Shown: positions 4,632 to 64,000 of the stretch, piece by piece
Numbering within the stretch: position 1 is the stretch's first letter
Layout of the letters: each line of letters opens with the position of its first letter
From: Macrostomum lignano
Taxonomy: Eukaryota
Direction: 5' to 3'
Assembly: GCA_002269645.1 (NCBI GenBank)
Contig: NIVC01001814.1
Location: 1-64,000 of the forward strand
Length of the DNA: 64,000 bases
Program-made: the position numbers and the translations under genes
Notes under the pieces: model-generated
The model's input: the letters and a program-made list of their open reading frames with translations, nothing else
Told to the model about the DNA's origin: nothing
Databases searched by the model: none

Positions 4632-7122
4632 CTACCGATGATTGTGACCCTTGCACATTGCAGAGAGTGCTCCTACCGATGTTTGTGACCCTTGCACATT
4701 GCAGAGAGTGGTCCTACCGATGATTGTGACCCTTGCACATTGCAGAGAGTGCTCCTACCGATGATTGTGACCCTTGCACATTGCAGAGAGTGCTCCTACC
4801 GATGATTGTGACCCTTGCACATTGCAGAGAGTGCTCCTACCGATGATTGTGACCGTTGCACATTACGGAGAGTGCTCCTACCGATGATTGTGACCCTTGC
4901 ACATTGCAGAGAGTGCTCCTACCGATGATTGTGACCCTTGCACATTGCAGAGAGTGCTCCTACCGATGATTGTGACCCTTGTACATTGCAGAGAGTGCCC
5001 TTCCGATGGAGTGTGACCCTTACACATTGCAGAGAGTGCTCCTACCGATGGAGTGTGACCCTTGCACATTGCAGAGAGTGCTCCTACCGATGATTGTGAC
5101 CCTTGCACATTGCAGAGAGTGCTCCTACCGATGATTGTGACCTTTGCACATTGCAGAGAGTGCTCCTACCGATGATTGTGACCCTTGCACATTGCAGAGA
5201 GTGCTCCTACCGATGATTGTGACCCTTGCACATTGCAGAGAGTGCTCCTACCGATGATTGTGACCCTTGCACATTGCAGAGAGTGCTCCTACCGATGATT
5301 GTGACCCTTGCACATTGCAGAGAGTGCTCCTACCGATGATTGTGACCCTTGCACATTGCAGAGAGTGCTCCTACCGATGATTGTGACCCTTGCACATTGC
5401 AGAGAGTGCTCCTACCGATGATTGTGACCCTTGCACATTGCAGAGAGTGCTCCTACCGATGATTGTGACCCTTGCACATTGCAGAGAGTGCTCCTACCGA
5501 TGTTTGTGACCCTTGCACATTGCAGAGAGTGCTCCTACGATGATTGTGACCCTTGCACATTGCAGAGAGTGCTCCTACCGATGATTGTGACCCTTGCACA
5601 TTGCAGAGAGTGCTCCTACCGATGATTGTGACCCTTGCACATTGCAGAGAGTGCTCCTACCGATGATTGTGACCCTTGCACATTGCAGAGAGTGCTCCTA
5701 CCGATGATTGTGACCCTTGCACATTGCAGAGAGTGCTCCTACCGATGATTGTGACCCTTGCACATTGCAGAGAGTGCTCCTACCGATGATTGTGACCCTT
5801 GCACATTGCAGAGAGTGCTCCTACCGATGATTGTGACCCTTGCACATTGCAGAGAGTGCTCCTACCGATGATTGTGACCCTTGCACATTGCAGAGAGTGC
5901 TCCTACCGATGATTGTGACCCTTGCACATTGCAGAGAGTGCTCCTACCGATGATTGTGACCCTTGCACATTGCAGAGAGTGCTCCTACCGATGATTGTGA
6001 CCCTTGCACATTGCAGAGAGTGCTCCTACCGATGATTGTGACCCTTGCACATTGCAGAGAGTGCTCCTACCGATGATTGTGACCCTTGCACATTACGGAG
6101 AGTGCTCCTACCGATGATTGTGACCGTTGCACATTGCAGAGAGTGCTCCTACCGATGATTGTGACCCTTGCACATTGCAGAGAGTGCTCCTACCGATGAT
6201 TGTGACCCTTGCACATTGCAGAGAGTGCTCCTACCGATGATTGTGACCCTTGCACATTGCAGAGAGTGCTCCTACCGATGATTGTGACCCTTGCACATTG
6301 CAGAGAGTGCTCCTACCGATGATTGTGACCCTTGCACATTGCAGAGAGTGGTCCTACCGATGATTGTGACCCTTGCACATTGCAGAGAGTGCTCCTACCG
6401 ATGTTTGTGACCCTTGCACATTGCAGAGAGTGCTCCTACGATGATTGTGACCCTTGCACATTGCAGAGAGTGCTCCTACCGATGATTGTGACCCTTGCAC
6501 ATTGCAGAGAGTGCTCCTACCGATGATTGTGACCCTTGCACATTGCAGAGAGTGCTCCTACCGATGGAGTGTGACCCTTGCACATTACAGAGAGTGCTCC
6601 TACCGATGATTGTGACCCTTGCACATTGCAGAGAGTGCTCCTACCGATGATTGTGACCCTTGCACATTGCAGAGAGTGCTCCTACCGATGATTGTGACCT
6701 TTGCACATTGCAGAGAGTGCTCCTACCGATGATTGTGACCCTTGCACATTGCAGAGAGTGCTCCTACCGATGATTGTGACCCTTGCACATTGCAGAGAGT
6801 GCTCCTACCGATGATTGTGACCCTTGTACATTGCAGAGAGTGCCCTTCCGATGGAGTGTGACCCTTACACATTGCAGAGAGTGCTCCTACCGATGGAGTG
6901 TGACCCTTGCACATTGCAGAGAGTGCTCCTACCGATGATTGTGACCCTTGCACATTGCAGAGAGTGCTCCTACCGATGATTGTGACCTTTGCACATTGCA
7001 GAGAGTGCTCCTACCGATGATTGTGACCCTTGCACATTGCAGAGAGTGCTCCTACCGATGATTGTGACCCTTGCACATTGCAGAGAGTGCTCCTACCGAT
7101 GATTGTGACCCTTGCACATTAC
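4632..7122. repeat. 41-bp tandem satellite (TACCGATGATTGTGACCCTTGCACATTGCAGAGAGTGCTCC)n, ~60 copies
   Basis: Period measured from 4633 to 4674 is 41 bp; the array is highly homogeneous. Confidence 0.97.
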
Positions 7123-7744
7123 GAGCTACGATATTCGACCTTCGACTCAACTCTTCGTTAAATGAATCATTACTCAAGTTGCAGGAGCATTTCTACGGTC
7201 ACACTGCTTACCAATGGGCCAAGCAATTTCAGTAAAGGTCACCGAACTCTCATTCTCGCTGACTATATAGCAGCAGTGATGAATGGCCGCGGTCGGGGCT
7301 GAGTTCTCAGCTCCTCTTTGCTGTCGAATTGTCGATCAATCACTGGCCGAATTATTGCTTCCACTGGCTCCACTCTGCATGAGGCCTTTTAGCTCGGCTC
7401 GCTTCCCTACCGCACACTCGCAGTTTCACACACAGTCAGCTCAGGGCCTCATTTTTTTCATTCTTGCCTTTGACCCGCCACAGCTCGCAGTCACCAGCGA
7501 CTCTATCCTCCTGCTTCTCAACAAGTGACGTTTCTGCTTGCATGTACTGCTGTTCTTGTCATGCTCCTAGATGTCTGCTTGACACCTCCGAATTTCATGG
7601 AATCTCATGGAATGACGTTGGAGAATCTCATACAGCTTCGGGGGAATCTCATTAAATGTTGTTAGAAAATCTCATAGAATGATTTTTGGGAAATCTCGTG
7701 GCGGTTATTTGGGGAATTCCATAAAATGCTTTTGGAAAACTCCC

Positions 7745-13864: not shown

Positions 13865-14431
<567 letters not shown>

Positions 14432-14755
14432 TACTAGTGTATGTGTGGTTACATAGACCGTTGTTCTGACAATGCGTTAGGTGGACCAATTAGTTATGGT
14501 TAGAAAATCGGGGAACCAGCTTAATTTGAGACGCTTGGAAAATACTGTTGCCTTTTTAATTTCAAAAGGTCTTCAATTCGAGTAAATTAAACTATTCGAA
14601 CTATGTTGTTAGGTAGACCAGGTTTAAACGGACCTTTAGAACATGATGGTGTACGTGGACCAATATACTGTGGACCAATATAAAAATCTAGAGCAACGAA
14701 GATTTTTAACAGTTTTAACAGTTAGATCTAAATTTGCAGCGGTCTCAGTGGCGAC

Positions 14756-14943
14756 TTATTTCACGTCCGTAAAAAATCCAAAGCAGTGAACACAAGGAAG
14801 ATAGGTGTGTACTTCCGTAGACTCCATGGTCACGCTTTTCTCCCGACAGACAATAATTTTACCGTCCTTTTCATCCTTCAGTACAGCAATATTGTGATGA
14901 AAATCGCCTAGAAGTCGCAGTCTGTCCATCTCCCGATTGTAAC
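14756..14943 (-). CDS. Element gene, last visible exon (GYNREMDRLRLLGDFHHNIAVLKDEKDGKIIVCREK...YLPCVHCFGFFTDVK*)
   Basis: CTGTTAG acceptor is in phase 1 with the G|GTAAG donor at 15242/15241 (298-bp intron). Motifs LRxxGxFxHN and YLPCxxCxGFF. Ends in a premature-looking stop. Confidence 0.7.
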
Positions 14944-15241
14944 CTAACAGAGAAATTAAAAAAGGCAGCCAATTAAATATAAATCTTTACGATCACAACA
15001 AAAAAGAATCAATCGATCTGACAGTTTAAATCATGCATATAGAGGCGTTCAAATAAAACTATTGTGCCAAACTGAAGCACGAGTAAATTCTGACTTGCTT
15101 CAGACAAAATTTGAAAGAATTAGTTTTCATTTTAAAAAACTAAAACCTAACCATTTAGATCAAACTATAAATATCCAAATACTAAAACCAGTGGACTATT
15201 TATTCAGTTTTGATGTAAGAAGCATATTCACTTAGGCTTAC

Positions 15242-16059
15242 CATTAGAATTAGAACCATAAGATAGCGCGCGCTGCACGTCCACTTGATCACTATGACAA
15301 CGAATAATATGCCGGCGTATTTTAGAAAACAGCTCATTACAGAAAACGCAATTATGACGCTTATTCTCAAATGATCGGCCCTTCATCTTCTTCTGTGCAT
15401 TCGACTCCAATTTTTCATTTTCGTCAGCAATCATTTGAAGAGCTGGATGTAGATCCGACGACAGCTCCTCGAGCTCGACGTCACCAAAGTCGAATTCAGG
15501 CACATCATCTACATTGCCAGAGGCAGCACTTTCTTCCACACAGGAATTCATCACCTTCTCAAACTCTACTTCGTCATCGAAATCACTCTCTTCGCTTTCG
15601 TTGCTGTCATCTAAGTCAACTTTTAATTTTTTTAATCGACAACCACCAAATCGCAACTTATTCATAACACGACTTCTAAGAGCAGACAGCCTTGAATTCG
15701 AAACTTCATTCGTCAACGGAACATTCGTCGTCGTAGACTGCTTTAAGGGAGAACGTCCAGATGAAGAATTCGGGAGCGCCAAGACACCAGGACTGCTCTT
15801 CTTGTCTCCAGGATGATTTTTCCGGGTTTGTCCAGCAGCCGCTGCCTCTTGAGTAGCTCTCGTCACCCTGGCCGATGCTGAGAGCTGTTCACGCGACTTA
15901 TGAACGGAAGTCGTCTTCTTCGTAGCCGCCTTCTCTACACTCGACTCATCGCGAGATGCACACGGTTCGCTGTCGCCAGCGTCAGCATCAGCAGAAGATC
16001 CCTCTGCTTGTGGGATGGTCACGTCGCTGCCCATCTGCACAATGATTGATTTTGATGAA
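15242..16059 (-). CDS. Element gene exon: Ser/acidic low-complexity region plus C2H2-like motif (CVFCNELFSKIRRHIIRCHSDQVDVQRAL)
   Basis: Open frame of ~270 aa bounded by an AG acceptor and a GTAAG donor; CxxC-x8-RH-x4-H motif. Confidence 0.7.
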
Positions 16060-16079
16060 CTAATGTAAACATATTATGA

Positions 16080-16525
16080 CTCAATGAGGGTTTAGCTGGA
16101 CCCCATGTCTGAAAGTATGTTTGGCAGTCGATGCTTCAAGCACCCACAGTCAATGTGAACGACATTTAATGAGGGTTTAGCTGGACCCCATGTCTGAAAG
16201 TATGTTTGGCAGTCGGTGCTTGAAGCACCCACAGTCAATGTGAAACATTCAATGAGGGTTTAGCTGGACCCCATGTCTGAAAGTATGTTTGGCAGTCGAT
16301 GCTTGAAGCACCCACAGTCAATGTGAACGACATTCAATGAGGGTTTAGCTGGACCCCATGTCTGAAAGTATGTTTGGCAGTCGGTGCTTGAAGCATCCAC
16401 ACTCAATGTGAACGACAATCAATGAGGGTTTAGCTGGACCCCATGTCTGAAAGTATGTTTGGCAGTCGGTGCTTGAAGCATCCACACTCAATGTGAAACA
16501 TTCAATGAGGGTTTAGCTGGACCCG
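16080..16525. repeat. 83/85-bp tandem repeat, block 1, inside the element
   Basis: Unit CAATGAGGGTTTAGCTGGACCCCATGTCTGAAAGTATGTTTGGCAGTCG[G/A]TGCTTGAAGCACCCACAGTCAATGTGAA(CG)ACATT. Confidence 0.93.
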
Positions 16526-16526
16526 C

Positions 16527-17135
16527 GACAAATATGCTGAAATTTGATTGACTGTGCTGACTTGGCATACGTCATGATAAAGTTTGCTTTTTTACAATCG
16601 AAACTAAGACATTGAAAGCTGCAGCATTTTTTGGCCCAATAAAAATGATATTCATTAAGTAAAGCGAATGCACTCTTCCAGCGTTAGTGTAACTCAACTC
16701 AGCAATGCTCACCGATTCAAAATGCTGACGCTGTGGTGACGGTTTCCGGTCTTGTATTTTGTTAGCAGATGACGTGATCATGAGATCAGCAGCACTTGAG
16801 TCGGATTCCTCAACCATAGCATTCTCCTTCGATGACTGGAGCGCCAAGGTACTAGGAGAGCTCTTCTTGTCTCCAGGATGGTTTTTCCGGGTTTGTCCAG
16901 CAGCCGCTGCCTCTTGAGTAGCTCTCGTCACCCTGGCCGATGCTGAGAGCTGTTCACGCGACTTATGAACGGAAGTCGTCTTCTTCGTAGCCGCCTTCTC
17001 TACACTCGACTCATCGCGAGATGCACACGGTTCGCTGTCGCCAGCGTCAGCATCAGCAGAAGATCCCTCTGCTTGTGGGATGGTCACGTCGCTGCCCATC
17101 TGCACAATGATTGATTTTGATGAACTAATGTAAAC
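16527..17135 (-). pseudogene. Duplicated element exon block, copy B (QMGSDVTIPQAE...KQTLS)
   Basis: First ~85 codons are near-identical to the 16059 exon; near-identical to copy C. Confidence 0.75.
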
Positions 17136-17144
17136 ATATTATGA

Positions 17145-18008
17145 CTCAATGAGGATTCAGCTGGACCCCATGTCTGAAAGTATGTTTGGCAGTCGGTGCT
17201 TGAAGCACCCACACTCAATGTGAACGACATTCAATGAGGGTTTAGCTGGACCCCATGTCTGAAAGTATGTTTGGCAGTCGATGCTTGAAGCACCCACAGT
17301 CAATGTGAAACATTCAATGAGGGTTTAGCTGGACCCCATGTCTGAAAGTATGTTTGGCAGTCGGTGCTTGAAGCATCCACACTCAATGTGAACGACAATC
17401 AATGAGGGTTTAGCTGGACCCCATGTCTGAAAGTATGTTTGGCAGTCGGTGCTTGAAGCATCCACACTCAATGTGAACGACAATCAATGAGGGTTTAGCT
17501 GGACCCCATGTCTGAAAGTATGTTTGGCAGTCGGTGCTTGAAGCACCCACAGTCAATGTGAACGACATTCAATGAGGGTTTAGCTGGACCCCATGTCTGA
17601 AAGTATATTTGGCAGTCGGTGCTTGAAGCACCCACAGTCAATGTGAACGACATTCAATGAGGGTTTAGCTGGACCCCATGTCTGAAAGTATGTTTGGCAG
17701 TCGGTGCTTGAAGCACCCACAGTCAATGTGAAACATTCAATGAGGGTTTAGCTGGACCCCATGTCTGAAAGTATGTTTGGCAGTCGATGCTTGAAGCACC
17801 CACAGTCAATGTGAAACATTCAATGAGGGTTTAGCTGGACCCCATGTCTGAAAGTATGTTTGGCAGTCGATGCTTGAAGCACCCACAGTCAATGTGAAAC
17901 ATTCAATGAGGGTTTAGCTGGACCCCATGTCTGAAAGTATGTTTGGTAGTCGATGCTTGAAGCACCCACAGTCAATGTGAAACATTCAATGAGGGTTTAG
18001 CTGGACCC
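17145..18008. repeat. 83/85-bp tandem repeat, block 2
   Basis: Same unit as block 1, ~10 copies. Confidence 0.93.
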
Positions 18009-18009
18009 G

Positions 18010-18612
18010 CGACAAATATGCTGAAATTTGATTGACTGTGCTGACTTGGCATACGTCATGATAAAGTTTGTTTTTTTACAATCGAAACTAAGACATTGAA
18101 AGCTGCAGCATTTTTTGGCCCAATAAAAATGATATTCATTAAGTAAAGCGAATGCACTCTTCCAGCGTTAGTGTAACTCAACTCAGCAATGCTCACCGAT
18201 TCAAAATGCTGACGCTGTGGTGACGGTTTCCGGTCTTGTATTTTGTTAGCAGATGACGTGATCATGAGATCAGCAGCACTTGAGTCGGATTCCTCAACCA
18301 TAGCATTCTCCTTCGATGACTGGAGCGCCAAGGTACTAGGAGAGCTCTTCTTGTCTCCAGGATGGTTTTTCCGGGTTTGTCCAGCAGCCGCTGCCTCTTG
18401 AGTAGCTCTCGTCACCCTGGCCGATGCTGAGAGCTGTTCACGCGACTTATGAACGGAAGTCGTCTTCTTCGTAGCCGCCTTCTCTACACTCGACTCATCG
18501 CGAGATGCACACGGTTCGCTGTCGCCAGCGTCAGCATCAGCAGAAGATCCCTCTGCTTGTGGGATGGTCACGTCGCTGCCCATCTGCACAATGATTGATT
18601 TTGATGAACTAC
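18010..18612 (-). pseudogene. Duplicated element exon block, copy C
   Basis: Translation identical to copy B over the shared span. Confidence 0.75.
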
Positions 18613-18661
18613 TCAATGTACTCATATGTACTCATTGATACTCAATGTAAACATATTATGA

Positions 18662-19698
18662 CTCAATGAGGATTCAGCTGGACCCCATGTCTGAAAGTAT
18701 GTTTGGCAGTCGGTGCTTGAAGCATCCACACTCAATGTGAACGACATTCAATGAGGGTTTAGCTGGACCCCATGTCTGAAAGTATGTTTGGCAGTCGATG
18801 CTTGAAGCACCCACAGTCAATGTGAAACATTCAATGAGGGTTTAGCTGGACCCCATGTCTGAAAGTATGTTTGGCAGTCGGTGCTTGAAGTATCCACACT
18901 CAATGTAAAACATTCAATGAGGGTTTAGCTGGACCCCATGTCTGAAAGTATGTTTGGCAGTCGGTGCTTGAAGCATCCACACTCAATGTGAACGACATTC
19001 AATGAGGGTTTAGCTGGACCCCATGTCTGAAAGTATGTTTGGCAGTCGATGCTTGAAGCACCCACAGTCAATGTGAAACATTCAATGAGGGTTTAGCTGG
19101 ACCCCATGTCTGAAAGTATGTTTGGCAGTCGGTGCTTGAAGCATCCACACTCAATGTGAACGACAATCAATGAGGGTTTAGCTGGACCCCATGTCTGAAA
19201 GTATGTTTGGCAGTCGGTGCTTGAAGCATCCACACTCAATGTGAACGACAATCAATGAGGGTTTAGCTGGACCCCATGTCTGAAAGTATGTTTGGCAGTC
19301 GGTGCTTGAAGCACCCACAGTCAATGTGAACGACAATCAATGAGGGTTTAGCTGGACCCCATGTCTGAAAGTATGTTTGGCAGTCGATGCTTGAAGCACC
19401 CACAGTCAATGTGAACGACATTTAATGAGGGTTTAGCTGGACCCCATGTCTGAAAGTATGTTTGGCAGTCGGTGCTTGAAGCACCCACAGTCAATGTGAA
19501 ACATTCAATGAGGGTTTAGCTGGACCCCATGTCTGAAAGTATGTTTGGCAGTCGATGCTTGAAGCACCCACAGTCAATGTGAACGACATTCAATGAGGGT
19601 TTAGCTGGACCCCATGTCTGAAAGTCTGTTTGGCAGTCGATGCTTGAAGCACCCACAGTCAATGTGAACGACATTCAATGAAGGTTTAGCTGGACCCC
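18662..19698. repeat. 83/85-bp tandem repeat, block 3
   Basis: Same unit, ~12 copies. Confidence 0.93.
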
Positions 19699-19962
19699 AC
19701 CTCTCAGATTGGAATGCTTTCGAATGAAATCGTGCCTTAAGATTCGATTGCGGAATGAAGTGGCATACATCTAAGTAACAGTTAAGTCAGGAGTTCCTAC
19801 CGTCATCGTTTTCTGCTGCTCGTTCGGCGGGAAGCATTTTTCTGGAATGTTTTGAGTTTGGTAGATTTTGAAAGAGAGTTAGATTGTCATTTTTTATCTG
19901 ACACAAGTTAGACGGTCAATTATTTAATAAGATTATTACACGTGATGACTAAAAATTCTTAC

Positions 19963-20293
19963 CGCAAGATGAATGCAGACTTTGAATCACACTTGTTGGT
20001 ATGTTGCTTCGTGGCTCCCAAGACTTTTGATTGCTAAAATATGAAAGCACTGTTTATTAGCCGAACCGATATGGCCGTATGGAAACAACTCTTAGTATAT
20101 ATAATAAATAGAGTGCAGTGGTGAATAAGTCTTTTGAAACTCACCTTGAATATCCTTTCCACTTTATGTAGAGCTTCCTTTTCGTGCACTTGATAATCCT
20201 TTCAACGTAGAAACGCCTACTAGCTTGGGGCTTTTTTTCTGCATGCTGGCGTGTTAAGGACAACCAGTTGGCAGAACCAACTTGTGAGGCCAA
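19963..20293 (-). CDS. Two exons (20293-20145, 20033-19963) encoding a chromodomain: RFYVERIIKCTKRKLYIKWKGYSSNQKSWEPRSNIPTSVIQ
   Basis: Canonical AG|GTGAGT donor and TTTTAG acceptor in matching phase 2. Chromodomain consensus F/YxVExI...YxxKWKGY....SWEPxxN. Not in the ORF track because it is spliced. Confidence 0.8.
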
Positions 20294-21387
20294 CTAATTC
20301 AAGTTAAAGTCTTGTTTGAGGTTGGGAATTGGTGTCTGTTTTTGTGATTAGGAAGATGTTTACGTTGACCCTCTATTTCAGACCCTCGACCTTGATGATT
20401 AAGCCAGCTACAGACCAATAAGAGCCCTTCGGAGGGAGAGAGGGAAATGACCAACGTTCAAACGGACGGACAGTAAGGAATGAAAGTTAAACCACCCCAT
20501 TCTTGACTGTCCGTTTAAGCACAGGATTGGCTGATGAGCTTTGGGGTTTGCTTGGACCTCAGTCAGGATGGTTCGGCTTTTAAGTTTCATTATCCAGCCC
20601 TATCCTATCGGTTGCCGAAGCTGTAAACGTTTGAATATAAAGCACACAAACTATTTTAGGAGTCCGTGCTGTAAGCAAGGCTCTTGTCTTTATGTCTCCT
20701 TAAATTAAGCAATGCTGCAAATGCAGCATGAGAAATTATGTAGTCATGCATAGCCTTCAATCTAGGTTCTCTAAAATCAACACTTGATGAAGCATTTATT
20801 CCAAGTATGATAGCGACAGGACTATTAGTGAACAGTTTTGTTTCAGAAACCACAAGTAATAAATAAAACCATCTCGTGAATTTTTAGTCATTATGGGCTA
20901 CATCGGAGCTTCGTTTGTAGCAGAAACTTCAATTTTACGAGCTATTTTACATTCCAATCACTTCGGCCTGTTTAGTAAGCTTGCTTCTGCAACTAAAAAA
21001 TGCCACAATGTGCTTAAACACGCATTTTAAAGAGCTATATCATAAAAAAATAAGTTTTCATACAAACAAAACATACACTATGTATGTGTGAAATTTGTCT
21101 GTTTTCGGGTTAGGTGGACCTCAGCGATGTGGTTTGGGTGGACTGTGTTAAAGGTCCTTGTAAACTAAAATACTCAATACTTAAAATCTAAACTACTTTA
21201 AGTAGAGGGACTTTGGCCACAGTAATGGCTGCCTTTCAGACTATGCAGTCAGTCAAGATAAACCCTCTCTGTACTTCCCATCGAGGAAATTTAAAGTGGT
21301 CCACTTAAAGGGTCCATGTAATCGAAAGGTCCCGCTAACGAGGCTTTTAAACCGACGGAGAGTCTACGCAAACACACATACACTAAC

Positions 21388-21764
<377 letters not shown>

Positions 21765-21876
21765 AATCCAGTAACCATCATCTACTACTGAAATTGTCAA
21801 TAGCATGGAGTCAGTAGTGCGTCAAGCTCTGGAGCTCTGGGCTTGTGGTTGAAGCCGGCTGGGAGGACTCACTCAC

Positions 21877-21959
21877 CCCTGGGAGGATGCGGCTACCGTG
21901 CAACAGGCTCTGGCACTGCTGGGCGCTCTCCGGCTGGCTGTAGGTGAGAAAGGCGCAGC
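21877..21959 (-). CDS. CELF: CELF/Bruno-like gene, exon 2 (GCAFLTYSQPESAQQCQSLLHGSRILPG)
   Basis: TTTCAG acceptor, GGG|GTGAGT donor, 83 bp. Contains RNP1 GCAFLTY and is in phase with exons 1 and 3. Confidence 0.92.
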
Positions 21960-24495: not shown

Positions 24496-25161
24496 CCAGG
24501 CCGGCGCGGTATTCGTATATTATATGGTGTTCATGAACTCAGTTACTAAGACTACTGCTGAGCTTAGCTATTTATCTATCAATTGCAACGCGATCTGAAA
24601 ATCTGCAAATTTAAAGAACATATATTTATAGGCTACAATTCATCTCCGCCGATGTCTGTAGACGTACCGGTCGTCGATGGACCTTTCTGGCAAATGGGTA
24701 TTTTTACACTACGCTGATAGATGATGACGTTATTCTTGACGTCGGATTGCTGCACAGTCAAGAAATAGAGGGTCTGATTAAAAGCCACGATGGGCAAGAG
24801 AAGCAAAACGATTCTAAAAACAAAAATAGACTTGGGCAGATTGGTCAACCATTCTGTTCCTTCATCCATCGATTCCGGTCGACGCTCCATCGAAGGACTG
24901 AACCTCCAAAAACGGGGGTCTTTTAGGATATACTGGGTAGTTACTGACAGCTTATTGAAATACGTTTCTAACCCCAATTGAATCGCCGTGAGTCCGTCAG
25001 TTGGTATTACAGGATAAAATTGTATTGAGCACTGTTGTACGAGCGTAGCTTTGCTCGACATAGACAGAGACTCGACAGAAACACAAATTAAATATCGTTA
25101 CAAATCCCATAAAAAGTACACGCTCGTACATTACTTTGATACCTTATATGCAGGTTCTCAC

Positions 25162-25375
25162 CTCTGTGCAGACCACTGCGTCGGTCCTTCAGAACAGTCA
25201 GCTCCACTATGTGGCCAAACTCTTCAAACATCGGCAGTAAATCCGACTCGGTCATCGTCCTAGGAATCTGCCCGATGAACAGCTTCAGTTGCTGTTGCTG
25301 TTGTTGCTGCTTCCCAGTCGCCTGGCAAGAGACAACTGGCTCCTGTTGCTGCTGTTGACTAAGACCGGCAACCAT
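25162..25375 (-). CDS. CELF: CELF/Bruno-like gene, exon 1 (polyQ leader plus start of RRM1)
   Basis: ATG at 25375; [42 protein letters not shown] is CELF3-6-like; G|GTGAG donor. Confidence 0.92.
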
Positions 25376-31136: not shown

Positions 31137-33369
31137 ATGTTCCCAGCAGTGCTCCTCCAGGTGCTCCTAACGGTTGCTCCGGTGGCAGCCAACCTGACGC
31201 ACGTCTCAAACATTCTTGACGGCCTTCTGAGCAACTACGACAGGCGCGCCAGGCCTCTGTTGGACTCCGACCAGCCGCTGGAGATCCGCATCAGCGTCAA
31301 CATCCGCAGCATGGGCCCGGTGTCCGACAAGGATATGGCCATCTCGCTGGACTGCTACTTCCGCCAGCTGTGGACAGACAAGCGACTCGCCTTCAGCTTG
31401 AACGACACCGGCTTTGAGTCGTTTCAATTGAACGAGAAATTTCTGAACGAAATCTGGCGACCGGACACATTCTTTCTCAATGGGCATGCGTCCTACCTGC
31501 ACAACATCACTTCGCCAAACGTTCTGATTCGGATCAAGCACACCGGGGAGATTCTGTACTCAATGCGGCTGACAATAAAGGTGACAATTTTCTCGAAAAT
31601 CTTTATCTCTTTAATAGTACGTAATAATTTAATCATAGTTGATTACACCTGCCCCAATAGAGCCAGGTGTGCAACCGATAGCTCAGCTGCAGCGATTGCG
31701 CGGCGCTGCGTACGGCTGTTTGGAGTCCAAGGACTGTTGGGGGTCGCCACACACATCTTCAATTAGCCATTTTACACTCTTGGTGAACTGAAGCAATGCA
31801 GAGTGAAGTGTCTTGCTCAAGGACACAAGTTGTTCCAGTGGGATCGGGAAACGAACCCCCGACCTTAAAGTCGTGAGTCCGACGCTCTAACCACTAGGCT
31901 AGAACCCTCTCCTTATAGAACAAGCGGTTTATCAATCAAGTGGAAGCTTCTCATGATCCATCAGGGTTGGTAAACTTTTGAGAATTTTGTGTTTTGCTTT
32001 CTGCACGTAACAGTTGCCCCCCCACCCGAATGTGTCCGGAACAACCGAAACCGAAACAGGCCCGTTGTCCAATGGACTTCAGCAACTACCCCATGGACAG
32101 GCAGCGCTGCCCGTTGCGCATCGGCAGCCACGGCTACCCGCTGACAGAGATTCGCTACGCCTGGCGACCCGGCCAGAGCCGCATCGAGACCGCGGCCAGC
32201 CTCATGATGGCCCAGTTCGACTTGGTGGCCTCGCCGGCCGGGTCCGGGCAGCAGCGGCTGGCCCGCCGAGGCATTCACTCCGTGCTAGCCGTTGACTTTG
32301 TGCTGAAAAGGCACATCGGTTTCTTTCTAATTCAGCTGTACTTTCCCTGCGCTCTGCTGGTGGTGCTGTCCTGGTAAGACCCGTTAGATACTGCTGGATA
32401 CTGTTGAATACTGTTGGATACTGTTGAATGCTGTTGGATACTGTTGGATGCTGTTAGATACTGTTGGATACTGTTGGATACTGTTGGATACTGTTGGATG
32501 CTGTTGGATGCTGTTGGATACTGCTGGATGCTGTTAGATACTGTTGGATACTGTTGGATACTGTTGGATGCTGTTGGATGCTGTTGGATACTGTTGGATA
32601 CTGTTGGATACTGTTGGATGCTGTTGGATGCTGTTGGATACTGTTGGATGCTGTTGGATACCGTTGGATAATGTTGGATGCTGTTGGATACTGTTGGATG
32701 CTGTTGGATACTGTTCGATACTGTTGGATACCGTTTTTGCTGTTAGTTTAGCGCATCAGCCCTCTTAATTCAATCTGATCTCATTCAAACTCCACCAGGG
32801 TGAGCTTCTGGCTGAACCGGGAGGCCACTGCGGACCGGGTGGCTCTCTGCATCATGACGGTGCTGAGCATGGCCTTCCTGTTCATGGACTGCCGCTCCGA
32901 CCTGCCCCGCGTGGGCTACTCCACGGCGCTGGATTGGTACGTAGCGCTCTGCTTCACCTTCGTGCTGAGCACACTGCTCCAGTTCGCTGTGGTGCACCAC
33001 TTCACCAAGCACGGCACTGGTGAAGTCTACCTGAGCATGGACTCCGACGCTTCCAGTAGCGACAGCGGCAGCGTCGACGAAGTCGGCCAAGTTAGTAGCG
33101 CCGCGATGTCGACTGAGCCGCGGGAGCTTCGACGGCGACGCCTCGGCCGATGCTTGCGCGATGCGGCGAGCTGCTTGCGCGGCAGTCGGCGCTGGCGCCA
33201 TTCCGGCCGGCGCCCGGCGGCCTGGCGCAACTCCGTCAGCGAAGTGGACCGGGCCGCCCGTCTGCTATTCCCGCTGGCCTTCGGGCTGCTCAACTGCGCC
33301 TACTGGGCCATCTACCTGCGAGGCTACTGGGCGGATGCGGGTGCTGGGGTCCTGCCCGGAGACTTTTGA
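31137..33369 (+). CDS. Cys-loop ligand-gated ion channel subunit, GABA-A alpha/GRD-like; join(31137..31580,32060..32373,32799..33369), ~442 aa
   Basis: Signal peptide, YDRRARP, IWRPDTFF, Cys-loop CPMDFSNYPMDRQRC, TM1-TM4. GT-AG introns with consistent phases (0, 2). TM2 region NREATADRVAL resembles insect GRD. Confidence 0.93.
31767..31901 (-). mobile_element. tRNA-derived SINE with CORE-like body, in receptor intron 1
   Basis: Minus strand shows A box TAGCCTAGTGG and B box GGTTCGTTTCC, then GTGTCCTTGAGCAAGACACTTCACTCT resembling the CORE domain. No tRNA 3' acceptor stem. Confidence 0.75.
32383..32730. repeat. 10-bp repeat (CTGTTGGAT[A/G])n in receptor intron 2
   Basis: Direct reading. Confidence 0.92.
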
Positions 33370-35909: not shown

Positions 35910-38476
<2,567 letters not shown>

Positions 38477-41556: not shown

Positions 41557-41851
<295 letters not shown>

Positions 41852-42155
41852 GTAGAATCTTCTATCATCTCTTGTAAATTTGCTATTGTATTTAAATGCT
41901 AATTAATGCTTGCCATTCCAAGTAAAAGCACATGAAGCAGTGTTTACTGATCTCACTCAGTTTTCTTTATGCAAAAGATGACAGCTTGCAAAGGCATGAT
42001 TAGGCTTCGGATTCCGGCACAAACCTCGCAGTGAAATCATTGAGTCAGATTTTTTATGCATTCTGGACCGAAAATACTGTTGGGACTCGGGATAAGAGAA
42101 AGAATCCTTAGTAAAGGGATGTCAACTTACTCCCGGAATGGAAGCGATGTACCGA

Positions 42156-50056: not shown

Positions 50057-54784
<4,728 letters not shown>

Positions 54785-57701: not shown

Positions 57702-59762
57702 TCAATCGCCACTCGGAATGTCGCTGCACTGAAACTCCACGATGCGAAATGCTTCTAGAAACTCGTTGAAGTCGATGTTGCCATCGCTATTGAGGTCCAT
57801 TGCCTTGGCCATGTCTGTCACTTCCGAGTCGGACAGATTGCGCTGCGTAGCCTGGCACAGGATGCGGCAGCACTCTTCGAATTCCTGCAGGCTGATCTGA
57901 CCGCTGCTGTCGCGGTCCATAATGCGAAAGATGGTCTCCAGCTCCTCCTTGTTCTTGTACACAGCTTCCGTCATAGAAGCATCCGGTTCGGCGGCTGAAC
58001 GTCCGCTTTGGTGCTGGACGGTGGCTCGCTGGAAGGTCGACATGTACAGTAGACGCCCGTCTGGCGCCAGCTGAGCAAGCTGAGGTCGCAGCGTTCGCCA
58101 CGGCAGATTGAGCTTCATCTCCGCTTCCATCACGGTGCACCACTGGGTGACGCTAACGCAGCCCGTCTTGTCGGGATCCAACTGATTGAAGGCCGCCACA
58201 AGCTGTGTCTTGGTCGCGGCAATCTTGGCTCGAAGGCTGCGCAAAGCGCCGTCCTCGACACTTGACAGTTGAAGACCCTGCGGCACTAAATTATTCTTGC
58301 TTGCTGAGAACTGGACGGTATGCAGCTGCCCGCTGTTGTCGAACTTGACGTAGGCACCCCGGTTGCTGCCCTCCGAGTAGTAGTTGGAGGCGGAGAAGAT
58401 CGTCAGCACGCTGTTGCCATGGTCAAACTCGTAGCCTTCGGGTTTGCATTCATGCGAACGAACTATCATAGTGAGCTTGTTTCGACGCAAGAAGCTCGCC
58501 GTGACATCAGGCCCGAAGTAGCAGCCTCCGCCGCGAAATGTATTTGGTCGGCAGCCTGAATGAGTCTTTGGATCGCTCCATAGCAGGTCGAGTACCTGGC
58601 GCCATTCCAGGTAGTCAACCTTTCCGCCCTCTGAATGAGGTGGTCGCAAAGCTGACAAATATTTGTGCCTGTCCAGACGACCGAGCTGTTCAAGGTCCAA
58701 CTTGTCCGAGATGCCGCCGTGAGCCACCAGGATGCGCTCGTCAATCACTGTTGCCAGGGGAAGCCAAGCGAATACGTCCGAGAACAGCTGCACAATCTTG
58801 TTGGCTGTTTGTCGATATTTTTTCTGCACCTCCTTAATGAACCCGTAGCGGCAGTTCATCACGTGATCTTCGTGGTTGCCGCGGTTGACGCAAACCGCGG
58901 TTGGCCACACGAGCTGGAAGGCGAACAAAAGCGCAGCGATTTCCACGGAATTCGGACCGCGGTCCACGAAGTCGCCGTTGAACACGTACGGGTTGGTGAC
59001 GTCCGGCAGGCCGTTCTTGTACAGCACGAGCAGCAAATCATCGAGCTTGCCGTGCAGGTCTCCAACCACCGTCATCTGCTTGGAGATGCTCGTGCTGGCC
59101 TGATAGATGTTGGGCCTTGCTTGTAAGGCTAGCCGAGTCTCATGCAGCAGTTGCAACAGGTAGCGCGCGTGCAGCTGTCCGCCCTGTCCGAATGAGTCGA
59201 TCATCATTTTTATGTGACTCGCGCTCAGAGGGAAGGTCAGGTGAGGACCTGAGTACGACTTCTCCACTTCGATGCTCTCAAAACCGGTCCGATCGAGGAG
59301 TTCGCGCTCGTCGTGGGCTCCACCGTCGCTCTGACGAAGCCGCTGAGCAAAGCCGCCTCCCCCGCCGCCGCCGCCGCCCTCGGCCTCCATGCCCAGGCGC
59401 AGCATGTCATTGAAGAAATTGTGCAGGTGTAGCTGACTTGACTCGCTGGAGTACTCGATGCTTTGGTAGACGACCCAGGCAGCTCGTCGTCTGGCCTCTA
59501 GGCGAGCCTTGTACCGACGGTACCATTTCTGGATTAGCACGGCTGACTTCAGGCTGACCTCGCTATTGCTGAGCGCCTTTTCTGTCTTCGCCTTCTGGCT
59601 GGACTTTGATACGGGGCTCGTTGCGCCCGTCTTCTTCCTGTTCGCGGTAGAGATTGGCACATCGCCAACGCTGACCGAATCGTCAGCTGCGCAGTTGCCG
59701 ACCGCTCCAACTCCGTTGCTGTCGCCAGTTTTCGGGCCAACAGCGCTTTGTCCGCAGCCCAT
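57702..59762 (-). CDS. PPEF: Serine/threonine protein phosphatase with EF-hands (PPEF/rdgC), intronless, 686 aa
   Basis: MGCGQS acylation-type N-terminus, IQ motif (IQKWYRRYKAR), PPP motifs GDLHG, GDFVDRG, RGNHE and SASNY, C-terminal EF-hands (DRDSSGQISLQE, DLNSDGNIDFNE). Confidence 0.96.
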   Translation of the reverse strand: MGCGQSAVGPKTGDSNGVGAVGNCAADDSVSVGDVPISTANRKKTGATSPVSKSSQKAKTEKALSNSEVSLKSAVLIQKWYRRYKARLEARRRAAWVVYQSIEYSSESSQLHLHNFFNDMLRLGMEAEGGGGGGGGGFAQRLRQSDGGAHDERELLDRTGFESIEVEKSYSGPHLTFPLSASHIKMMIDSFGQGGQLHARYLLQLLHETRLALQARPNIYQASTSISKQMTVVGDLHGKLDDLLLVLYKNGLPDVTNPYVFNGDFVDRGPNSVEIAALLFAFQLVWPTAVCVNRGNHEDHVMNCRYGFIKEVQKKYRQTANKIVQLFSDVFAWLPLATVIDERILVAHGGISDKLDLEQLGRLDRHKYLSALRPPHSEGGKVDYLEWRQVLDLLWSDPKTHSGCRPNTFRGGGCYFGPDVTASFLRRNKLTMIVRSHECKPEGYEFDHGNSVLTIFSASNYYSEGSNRGAYVKFDNSGQLHTVQFSASKNNLVPQGLQLSSVEDGALRSLRAKIAATKTQLVAAFNQLDPDKTGCVSVTQWCTVMEAEMKLNLPWRTLRPQLAQLAPDGRLLYMSTFQRATVQHQSGRSAAEPDASMTEAVYKNKEELETIFRIMDRDSSGQISLQEFEECCRILCQATQRNLSDSEVTDMAKAMDLNSDGNIDFNEFLEAFRIVEFQCSDIPSGD

Positions 59763-63382: not shown

Positions 63383-64000
63383 TCAGGCGCCGCTTTGAAA
63401 CTCGACAATGCGAAATGCTTCTAAGAACTCGTTGAAATCGATTTTTCCATCTTTATTGAGGTCCAAAGCCTTGGCCATGTCAACAATTTCATCTTCTGAT
63501 AAGTTCCTCTTGGTGACTCTGCCCAGAACTCGGCAGCACTCCTTGAACTCGTCCAGACTGATGTGGCCGCTATTGTCGCGGTCCATGATTCGGAAGATGT
63601 CTCCAGCTTCTCTCTGCTCTTGTAAACAGATTCCATCATTGAGGCATCCGGTGCAGAGGCGGATCGGCCACCCTGGTGCTGCACAGCCGTCCGCTGGAAG
63701 GTCGACATGTACATGACGCGTTTGTCCGGAGTCAGCTTAACCAGGCGAGGTCGGAGCCTTCGCCACGGCAGACTAAGCTGCAGCTCCGATTCCATTGCGC
63801 TGCACCACTGGGCGATGGTGACGCAGTCCGTCTTGCCGAAATCCAGTTCGCTGAAGGCCGCCACGAGCTGGACCCTGCTAGCGGCAATCTTGGCGCGGAG
63901 GCCGCGCAATGCAGCGTCCTCGAAGGTTGCAAGCCGACGACCTAGCGGGAGCTGCTTCGACTTGCTGGCGCAGAGCTGCATAACTCTAGGCTGCCCGCTG
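63383..64000 (-). CDS. PPEF: Second PPEF/rdgC paralog, 3' part (runs off the window), with a 1-bp frameshift at ~63599
   Basis: Aligns with copy 1 from the end of the catalytic domain to FLEAFRIVEFQ. Plus strand reads AAGATGTCTCC versus AAGATGGTCTCC in copy 1. Confidence 0.85.

Follow-up and report, generated by a model that had tools for sequence, protein, structure and literature searches.

The 64000-nt stretch of the Macrostomum lignano genome analysed here (contig NIVC01001814.1 of assembly GCA_002269645.1, positions 1 to 64000 of the forward strand; hereafter the window) harbours, at positions 14435-21385, a segment with inverted ends that is enclosed on both sides by an (AGAC)n microsatellite and that carries, on the minus strand, part of a gene for a chromodomain and zinc-finger protein. 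An original prediction, made from the sequence alone, had taken this segment for an internally deleted, microsatellite-targeting DNA transposon with a remnant of a CryptonV-like protein, nested in an intron of a CELF gene. The location proved correct, as RRM1 exons of a CELF gene lie on either side of the segment on the minus strand (~25088-25300, 21811-21900 and 10080) and the joined exons matched both Pfam RRM_1 (1.5e-15) and CELF1 RRM1 in the Protein Data Bank (PDB; 5.9e-37). As judged from the sequence, the element at 14435-21385 interrupts a CELF intron.

The two ends, TAGTGTATGTGTGGTTACATAGAC (14435-14458, plus strand) and TAGTGTATGTGTGTTTGCGTAGAC (21362-21385, minus strand), match at 21 of 24 positions, with the outer 13 nt in perfect agreement, and when the window was scanned with the end motif at up to 3 mismatches the only 2 matches were the element ends themselves (0.00 expected, 100 shuffles). 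On the plus strand the left border reads ...(AGAC)n ATAC|TAGTGTATGTGTGGTTACATAGAC... at 14435 and the right border ...GTCTACGCAAACACACATACACTA|ACAC (AGAC)n at 21385. End comparison and Tandem Repeats Finder (TRF) thus bear out both the 24-bp imperfect terminal inverted repeats and the (AGAC)n flanks of the original prediction. When parsed in the frame of the repeat (AAAC ACAC ATAC ACTA), the inverted end resembles a degenerate (AGAC)n target.

The motif GGACC/GGTCC, already noticed as recurring near both ends, is indeed present there: the left terminal 300 bp contain four copies and the right five, whereas 0.27 would be expected at its frequency in the remaining window (≈15-fold enrichment; Poisson P ≈1e-5). 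Thirty further copies, approximately one per unit, lie in the 85-bp tandem arrays of the element, and none was found in its coding part in a motif count over the window. At the two ends the motifs mostly point in opposite directions, which fits protein-binding sites arranged relative to the ends. A local 15-bp duplication at 14648-14685 (GTGGACCAATATAC...) gives the window copy one GGACC more than L001, the shortest of the full-length copies described below.

The gene of the element runs on the minus strand and extends further upstream than the original prediction had recognized, up to the chromodomain exons. Three 85-bp arrays are present and, in gene direction, each precedes one copy of a first coding exon beginning with MGSDV. 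The two exons that had been spliced by hand hold together: a donor AATG|GTAAGC at 15242/15241 and an acceptor TTAG|GT at 14944/14943 form a GT...AG junction that leaves the frame open, and the spliced 326-aa product (MGSDV...FFTDVK) is identical to the UniRef entry A0A1I8H179 of M. lignano. The spliced peptide is moreover 99% identical to residues 409-522 of PAA76011.1, a protein of 1184 aa, in agreement with the proposal that it represents the N-terminal part of a large protein ending in a tyrosine-recombinase domain.

Compared with L001, the window copy lacks the 2.73 kb corresponding to L001 14651-17382, the part of the last exon that encodes all of the protein after residue 539, core-binding and catalytic domains included; both the internal deletion and the absence of any recombinase domain from the window had been correctly called. 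Outside the deletion the two copies are 97-99% identical. Both ends are retained, and at the gene's 3' end the final 234 bp agree at 99% with L001 17414-17647. What remains of the last exon carries a frameshift, due to the loss of one T in a T run at 14771-14776 (plus strand), and a stop codon (TGG>TGA) at 14745-14747, with the result that the open reading frame (ORF) stops at aa 522 plus a frameshifted TDVK and the catalytic domain of the recombinase is gone. The segment 14435-21385 is therefore an internally deleted, non-autonomous copy in which both ends and the gene's 5' half survive. With the recombinase half lost, and a frameshift and a stop codon in addition, it could move only with the enzyme of an intact copy, and such mobilization in trans would be possible in principle. 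A second UniRef entry, A0A1I8IDF7 (P0154), shows the same frameshifted tail with three substitutions, which suggests from sequence that the broken derivative is present in more than one copy.

Full-length copies and their probable recombinase

A Pfam scan and a word-indexed protein search with the 328-aa peptide returned no matches. An exhaustive HMMER search with the 118-aa zinc-finger region retrieved 1359 representatives (clusters at 50% identity) at E ≤1e-3, including, at 99% identity, P0002, which is PAA76011.1 of M. lignano. Three loci encoding members of the PAA76011.1 cluster were then taken from the same assembly, and each of them (L001, L002 and L003) proved to contain the full-length, recombinase-bearing copy that the original prediction had proposed to look for. 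The peptide belongs to a multi-copy transposon protein, with four copies examined in M. lignano counting that of the window, and not to a single-copy host gene. The intact copies are 97-99% identical to each other. L002 and L003 are longer through expansion of an internal block made of the 85-bp array and the first coding exon, so that the elements span 7-38 kb; some of this expansion could be an assembly artefact, and the annotated proteins carry one or two copies of the duplicated MGSDV exon. In the 8.8-kb copy L001 no ORF of at least 100 aa was found outside the recombinase gene.

The junctions are letter-identical in 4/4 copies, reading ...GTCTGTCTGTGT|TAGTGTATGTGTG... and ...CACACATACACTA|GTATGTCTGTCT... 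on the gene strand. All eight ends adjoin (GTCT)n in a single orientation and phase, the three full-length copies sitting in (TGTC)n, which reads GTCT on the gene strand. This is one of eight possible combinations of orientation and phase, and by our own calculation three more copies would agree with the first by chance with a probability of (1/8)^3, or ≈0.002. BLAST detected no similarity between the loci in the unique flanks beyond the microsatellites (1.5 kb), and as these flanks are unrelated the four copies represent four independent insertions. A target-site duplication was found in none of the four; the units adjoining the element, GTGT on one side and GTAT on the other, are not alike, neither of them is GTCT, and both are constant. 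Identical ends in unrelated flanks and a constant microsatellite context agree with the transposon nature and with the target preference that had been proposed. We interpret the family, with a probability of roughly 80%, as a young single-gene DNA transposon of M. lignano, whose intact copies of at least 8.8 kb encode a tyrosine recombinase and which inserts at a fixed position of (GTCT)n, the window copy being dead.

PAA76011.1 is composed of an N-terminal chromodomain, a disordered region derived from the duplicated exon, a double zinc-finger module (C2H2 and C2HC), a helical core-binding-like domain, a tyrosine-recombinase catalytic domain and a basic tail. The chromodomain was found in the M. 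lignano protein and in none of the other family members scanned with Pfam. In an alignment of the C-terminal 216 residues of 19 homologues, R790 (in NRRRxxE), G838-K839, R911, G936-H937 and Y946 (P0002 numbering) are invariant, and thus R, K, R, H and Y occur in the canonical order and spacing, with K839 as the hairpin lysine. The AlphaFold model of the whole C-terminal part gave in Foldseek a weak best match with XerA (E 0.26); when the catalytic part was modelled alone, the seven best matches in the PDB were all tyrosine recombinases, led by XerH (5jjv, E 7e-3, probability 1.00) and XerA (5hxy, E 1.9e-2). Against a viral library, the top matches of the longer C-terminal model were a phage integrase (7.9e-3), a hytrosavirus Tyr recombinase (1.3e-2) and Vlf-1, and a PHROGs search gave three single-member matches, two of them integrases. 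The homologue P0203, aligned with P0002 over 400 residues at 34% identity (E 2e-58), passes the Pfam PF00589 cut-off across the K-R-H-Y region (29.0 bits versus 27.1), while showing no match among PDB sequences; P0242 and P0303 score just under the same cut-off, and several homologues are named 'Tyr recombinase domain-containing' in UniRef. Taken together, the invariant residues, the Foldseek matches and the PF00589 match of P0203 make a tyrosine recombinase a well-supported assignment for PAA76011.1, short of proof, the fold scores being weak and the catalytic tail poorly modelled.

Profile searches place the protein family in flatworms, molluscs, beetles, echinoderms, a hemichordate, teleosts and a coral (Montipora P0316), and almost none of the 1359 representatives has a domain annotation. 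In the beetle Diabrotica virgifera the homologue P0168 lies inside an element of ≈6.9 kb (L004 5799-12683, OU830633.1) that has 19-bp inverted ends (ATATTTATGGCAACTTGTG) and is flanked by (GT)n arrays, one 1.2 kb and the other 2.0 kb long; the end motif GTTGCCAT recurs in a 118-bp tandem array inside the element (6785-7463). Judging by its sequence, this is an element of the same architecture in another microsatellite, in line with the proposed microsatellite targeting. Clear element borders were not found for the homologue loci of Amphiura, Engraulis, Phaedon and Micropterus, each examined as one copy, and the Engraulis locus showed no clear flanking pattern; these homologues may be old, domesticated or differently targeted. 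Large 5' tandem arrays are a feature of the Amphiura homologue, too. Single predicted proteins of many animals (P0001, P0003 and others) contain the double zinc-finger module several times in tandem, as in a 4571-aa protein of Elysia, where 9 stretches matched, and in an Umbra protein with three near-identical repeats, which suggests nested or concatenated tandem element copies, or repeated exons.

Table 1. Coordinates of the element in the window, and of the full-length copies in their respective loci
Feature	Position	Strand	Basis or remark
Left half of the putative target microsatellite, (AGAC)141	13867-14431		TRF and unit parse; unit nearest the element is ATAC
Terminal inverted repeat at the 3' end of the gene	14435-14458	+	Identical to that end in the three full-length copies
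Subterminal region with four GGACC motifs, one via the local 15-bp duplication	14435-14734		Motif count; comparison with L001
Deletion junction	14713-14720	-	L001 alignment; 8-bp filler or duplication TGTTAAAA at the joint
Last-exon remnant, aa 465-539 of PAA76011.1, C2HC finger PCVHC...H...C	14721-14944	-	Alignment to PAA76011.1
Main upstream coding exon, aa 201-465, ending in C2H2-like finger CVFC...H....H	15240-16034	-	99% identical to PAA76011.1
85-bp tandem array, 5.3 units, intronic	16081-16524		TRF; one GGACC and palindrome GGTGCTTGAAGCACC per unit
MGSDV exon, second copy, matching aa 72-201	16710-17099	-	ORF/protein alignment
85-bp tandem array, 10.3 units	17146-18008		TRF
MGSDV exon, third copy, matching aa 72-201	18194-18583	-	ORF/protein alignment
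85-bp tandem array, 12.3 units	18663-19699		TRF
5' exons including the chromodomain	~20239-19777	-	Pfam PF00385 (Chromo), 26.7 bits versus cut-off 25.1
Subterminal region with five GGACC/GGTCC motifs, 5' end of the gene	21086-21385		Mostly in opposite orientation to the other end
Terminal inverted repeat at the 5' end of the gene	21362-21385	-	End comparison
Right half of the putative target microsatellite, (AGAC)n	21388-21762		TRF (ACAG)94 and unit parse; unit nearest the element is ACAC
Full-length copy L001	8870-17647		8778 bp; same inverted ends
Full-length copy L002	8873-47284		38.4 kb; same inverted ends
Full-length copy L003	1770-17655		15.9 kb; same inverted ends

The window as a whole (1-64000) is very rich in tandem repeats, with 41 TRF rows of score at least 200 and long minisatellites with units of 11-90 bp, and contains other tetranucleotide arrays, (TAGA)75 at 41557-41856 and (AGTT)94 at 50726-51101. 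Among neighbouring genes, an uninterrupted 686-aa ORF at 57702-59762 (minus strand) resembles a PPEF-type protein phosphatase with its C-terminal EF-hand region, and a partial second copy of its C-terminal part lies 3.7 kb away at 63421-63981 (minus strand). ORFs at 31137-33369 (plus strand) resemble exons of a Cys-loop ligand-gated chloride-channel subunit of the gamma-aminobutyric acid (GABA)/glycine receptor type. Both resemblances come from inspection of the translations.

Proposed insertion model and alternative explanations

In the mechanism we propose, the recombinase would join the two ends of the element into a circle, where the 13-bp perfect inverted arms CACACATACACTA / TAGTGTATGTGTG would surround an 8-bp spacer, GTATGTGT, in the layout of a recombinase core site; the predicted circle junction on the gene strand is CACTA-GTATGTGT-TAGTG. 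This site would recombine conservatively with GTCTGTCT in (GTCT)n, which differs from the spacer only at positions 3 and 7, and strand exchange would presumably take place within the shared central TGT. The products of such an exchange would be the hybrid junctions of every copy, GTCT-GTGT|TAGTG and CACTA|GTAT-GTCT, and nearly all ends of the family should accordingly be expected to read ...GTCTGTGT|TAGTG. A conservative exchange would explain at once the missing target-site duplication, the fixed orientation and the repeat phase maintained across the insertion. The GGACC motifs of the subterminal regions and of the 85-bp arrays are probably accessory binding sites, candidates for contact with the zinc fingers or with another DNA-binding part. 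The scheme is modelled, by analogy, on the mechanism proposed for Cryptons, which is borne out in Chlamydomonas, where the active CryptonF-1_cRei integrates at, and cleanly excises from, a 5-bp shared motif (PMC9977147).

The window has another (GACA)n array, ≈490 bp in length (36073-36560), in which no element resides. Single-unit variants ACTA, which are the last four bases of the inverted end, and ACAC, the unit adjoining the element, occur in all three arrays (13867-14431, 21388-21762 and the unoccupied 36073-36560), and a footprint test found the corresponding gene-strand variants TAGT and GTGT to be common in the arrays, the unoccupied one at 36 kb included. These variants may be footprints of excision; alternatively, the ends may have originated from them.

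Several observations weigh against our interpretation. As regards the enzyme, the His of the H-x-x-R motif is replaced by Thr (T908), conserved in at least 90%; P0002 itself has no Pfam recombinase match, Chromo being its only Pfam match, and no PDB sequence match, and a profile of its C-terminal half gave weak zinc-finger matches only. None of the Foldseek matches of the catalytic part reaches 1e-3 (E at least 7e-3, TM-scores up to 0.38), and the predicted local distance difference test (pLDDT) score of that model is 78 overall and ≈55 in the last third, the stretch containing R911, H937 and Y946. As regards the target, the evidence on microsatellite and junctions comes from four M. lignano copies, and the homologous genes of Phaedon, Micropterus and Amphiura have no flanking microsatellite within 10 kb. 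Since ACAC and ACTA are also found in the unoccupied array, part of the assigned junction could be target variation. As regards the exchange, the shared core would measure 3 nt, compared with the 6-8-nt overlap of well-studied tyrosine recombinases, and no circle, empty allele or excision product was seen.

In an alternative reading, the same element and enzyme are assigned other boundaries and another crossover, with ATAC used as a direct repeat as in the classical Crypton model reportedly put forward by Goodwin et al. in 2003, and with ACTA and ACAC belonging to the target. The ATAC on the left of the element (plus strand) does recur inside the right end (...CACATAC|ACTA), is found at both positions in 4/4 copies, and would place the circle junction at CACACATAC-TAGTG; ACTA and ACAC are, as said, variants of (AGAC)n present even where no element resides. 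Precedents for such an arrangement are the 4-6-bp terminal direct repeats of classical Cryptons (Kojima & Jurka 2011, PMC3212892) and the 5-bp shared motif of CryptonF-1_cRei (PMC9977147). On the other hand, the target would then be no plain repeat but a variant patch, ATAC ACTA ACAC, within the microsatellite; this compound patch is absent from the unoccupied stretches of the arrays examined and would be needed in four independent arrays, while ACTA pairs with TAGT in the 13-bp perfect inverted repeat and is more simply read as part of the element. We regard these alternative boundaries as unlikely, although better placed than the two explanations that follow.

Clear terminal inverted repeats with repeated subterminal motifs are also typical of cut-and-paste transposons, and a deletion with a short filler at the joint resembles abortive gap repair, so that the element might be moved by an unlinked DDE transposase whose own preference dictates the flanks, the zinc-finger/recombinase-like gene being captured cargo; a DDE element targeting (AT)n is indeed known from endogenous nimaviruses (PMC10871703). 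Such an origin appears very improbable to us, given that no target-site duplication accompanies the insertions, that the GTGT and GTAT units are identical across the four copies and that orientation is fixed relative to an asymmetric repeat. With no second ORF of at least 100 aa, the 8.8-kb copy has no transposase ORF either, and the element that houses the beetle homologue differs both in its ends and in its microsatellite, which argues that gene and targeting travel together. It is hardly credible, in turn, that no mobile element is involved and that a multi-copy host family of chromodomain/zinc-finger genes was spread by segmental or whole-genome duplication, with microsatellites nearby by chance. 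The M. lignano genome is recently duplicated, annotation treats the proteins as ordinary hypothetical or C2H2 ones and some homologues elsewhere lack obvious element borders; however, similarity between the copies ends exactly at the inverted repeats, leaving 1.5-kb unique flanks unrelated, 8/8 ends adjoin the same repeat in the same phase, and the window copy interrupts the intron of an unrelated gene.

Relationship to known elements and significance

According to the passage of PMC8869645 that cites a 2012 Repbase Reports note by Kapitonov & Jurka on cnidarian elements, some CryptonV families insert specifically into microsatellites. The CryptonV label of the original prediction fits this published behaviour, the M. 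lignano family being set beside CryptonV by description and not by sequence comparison. Like CryptonV, it would be a DNA transposon with a single tyrosine-recombinase gene and no reverse transcriptase; 4/4 M. lignano copies lie in (GTCT)n and the Diabrotica homologue in (GT)n, matching the microsatellite specificity reported in that passage (PMC8869645), and the protein family includes the coral homologue of Montipora. The host, in contrast, is a flatworm, and the chromodomain sets its protein apart from the other family members scanned.

With the classical Cryptons (CryptonF, A, I and S) the family shares a recombinase as sole enzyme, the absence of target-site duplications and a proposed circle that integrates conservatively at a short sequence common to element and target. 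Classical Cryptons have no terminal inverted repeats (PMC3212892) and use a 5-bp motif, whereas the M. lignano element has 24-bp inverted ends and a microsatellite as target; Pfam scans of P0002 and its homologues revealed neither a DUF3504 nor a GCR1_C domain. Endogenous nimaviruses encode tyrosine recombinases described as bearing a zinc-binding domain of the C2H2 type, and insert into the telomere repeat (TAACC)n (Kawato et al. 2023, PMC10871703). These enzymes are alike in being eukaryote-borne, in their C2H2 domain and in the insertion into short tandem repeats, a likeness of function and not of compared sequence, but they belong to giant viral genomes, unlike a 9-kb element with one gene. 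The R1-clade families of non-long-terminal-repeat (non-LTR) retrotransposons that insert specifically into microsatellites (reviewed in PMC8869645) share the simple-repeat niche, which spares genes from damage; they move via RNA with an endonuclease and a reverse transcriptase, whereas the M. lignano element has neither and possesses defined inverted ends.

A recombinase-bearing retrotransposon of the DIRS, Ngaro or PAT type was ruled out, the element having a single gene whose only Pfam match is Chromo and no reverse transcriptase or RNase H. The marks of DDE cut-and-paste transposons are likewise missing, with neither a target-site duplication nor a transposase ORF. A literature search for papers on Cryptons in Macrostomum found none in the collection covered. 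The M. lignano family adds a flatworm example to a kind of element that already has a name but has been little studied.

To our knowledge, what is known of animal DNA transposons with a tyrosine recombinase comes almost entirely from database entries, and their chemistry, ends and target choice have not been studied in any animal. The M. lignano family offers intact and deleted copies side by side and junctions, identical to the letter, from which a specific core site and crossover are predicted, in a host for which transgenesis and line comparisons are routine. Interest lies in the family rather than in the dead copy of the window: the family is young and intact, its junctions are precisely defined and its host is a laboratory flatworm. 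For the host genome, the window copy indicates that an insertion of 7 kb on the same strand is tolerated in a long intronic (AGAC)n tract of a conserved splicing regulator, and the M. lignano gene sets list transposon proteins (PAA76011.1, A0A1I8H179) as ordinary host genes.

Quite tentatively, and with the odds in our estimate against it, the proteins combining zinc fingers and recombinase may form a large, essentially undescribed superfamily of metazoan site-specific integrases; the ends of the elements would mimic the simple repeat chosen as target, and the M. lignano family would be active now. If this were true, an element could pass to another target, such as (GT)n in place of (GTCT)n, by changing its end, its spacer and its zinc-finger module, and the family would provide an animal integrase that is natural and open to testing, with a landing site that is repeated and harmless, in a flatworm amenable to transgenesis.

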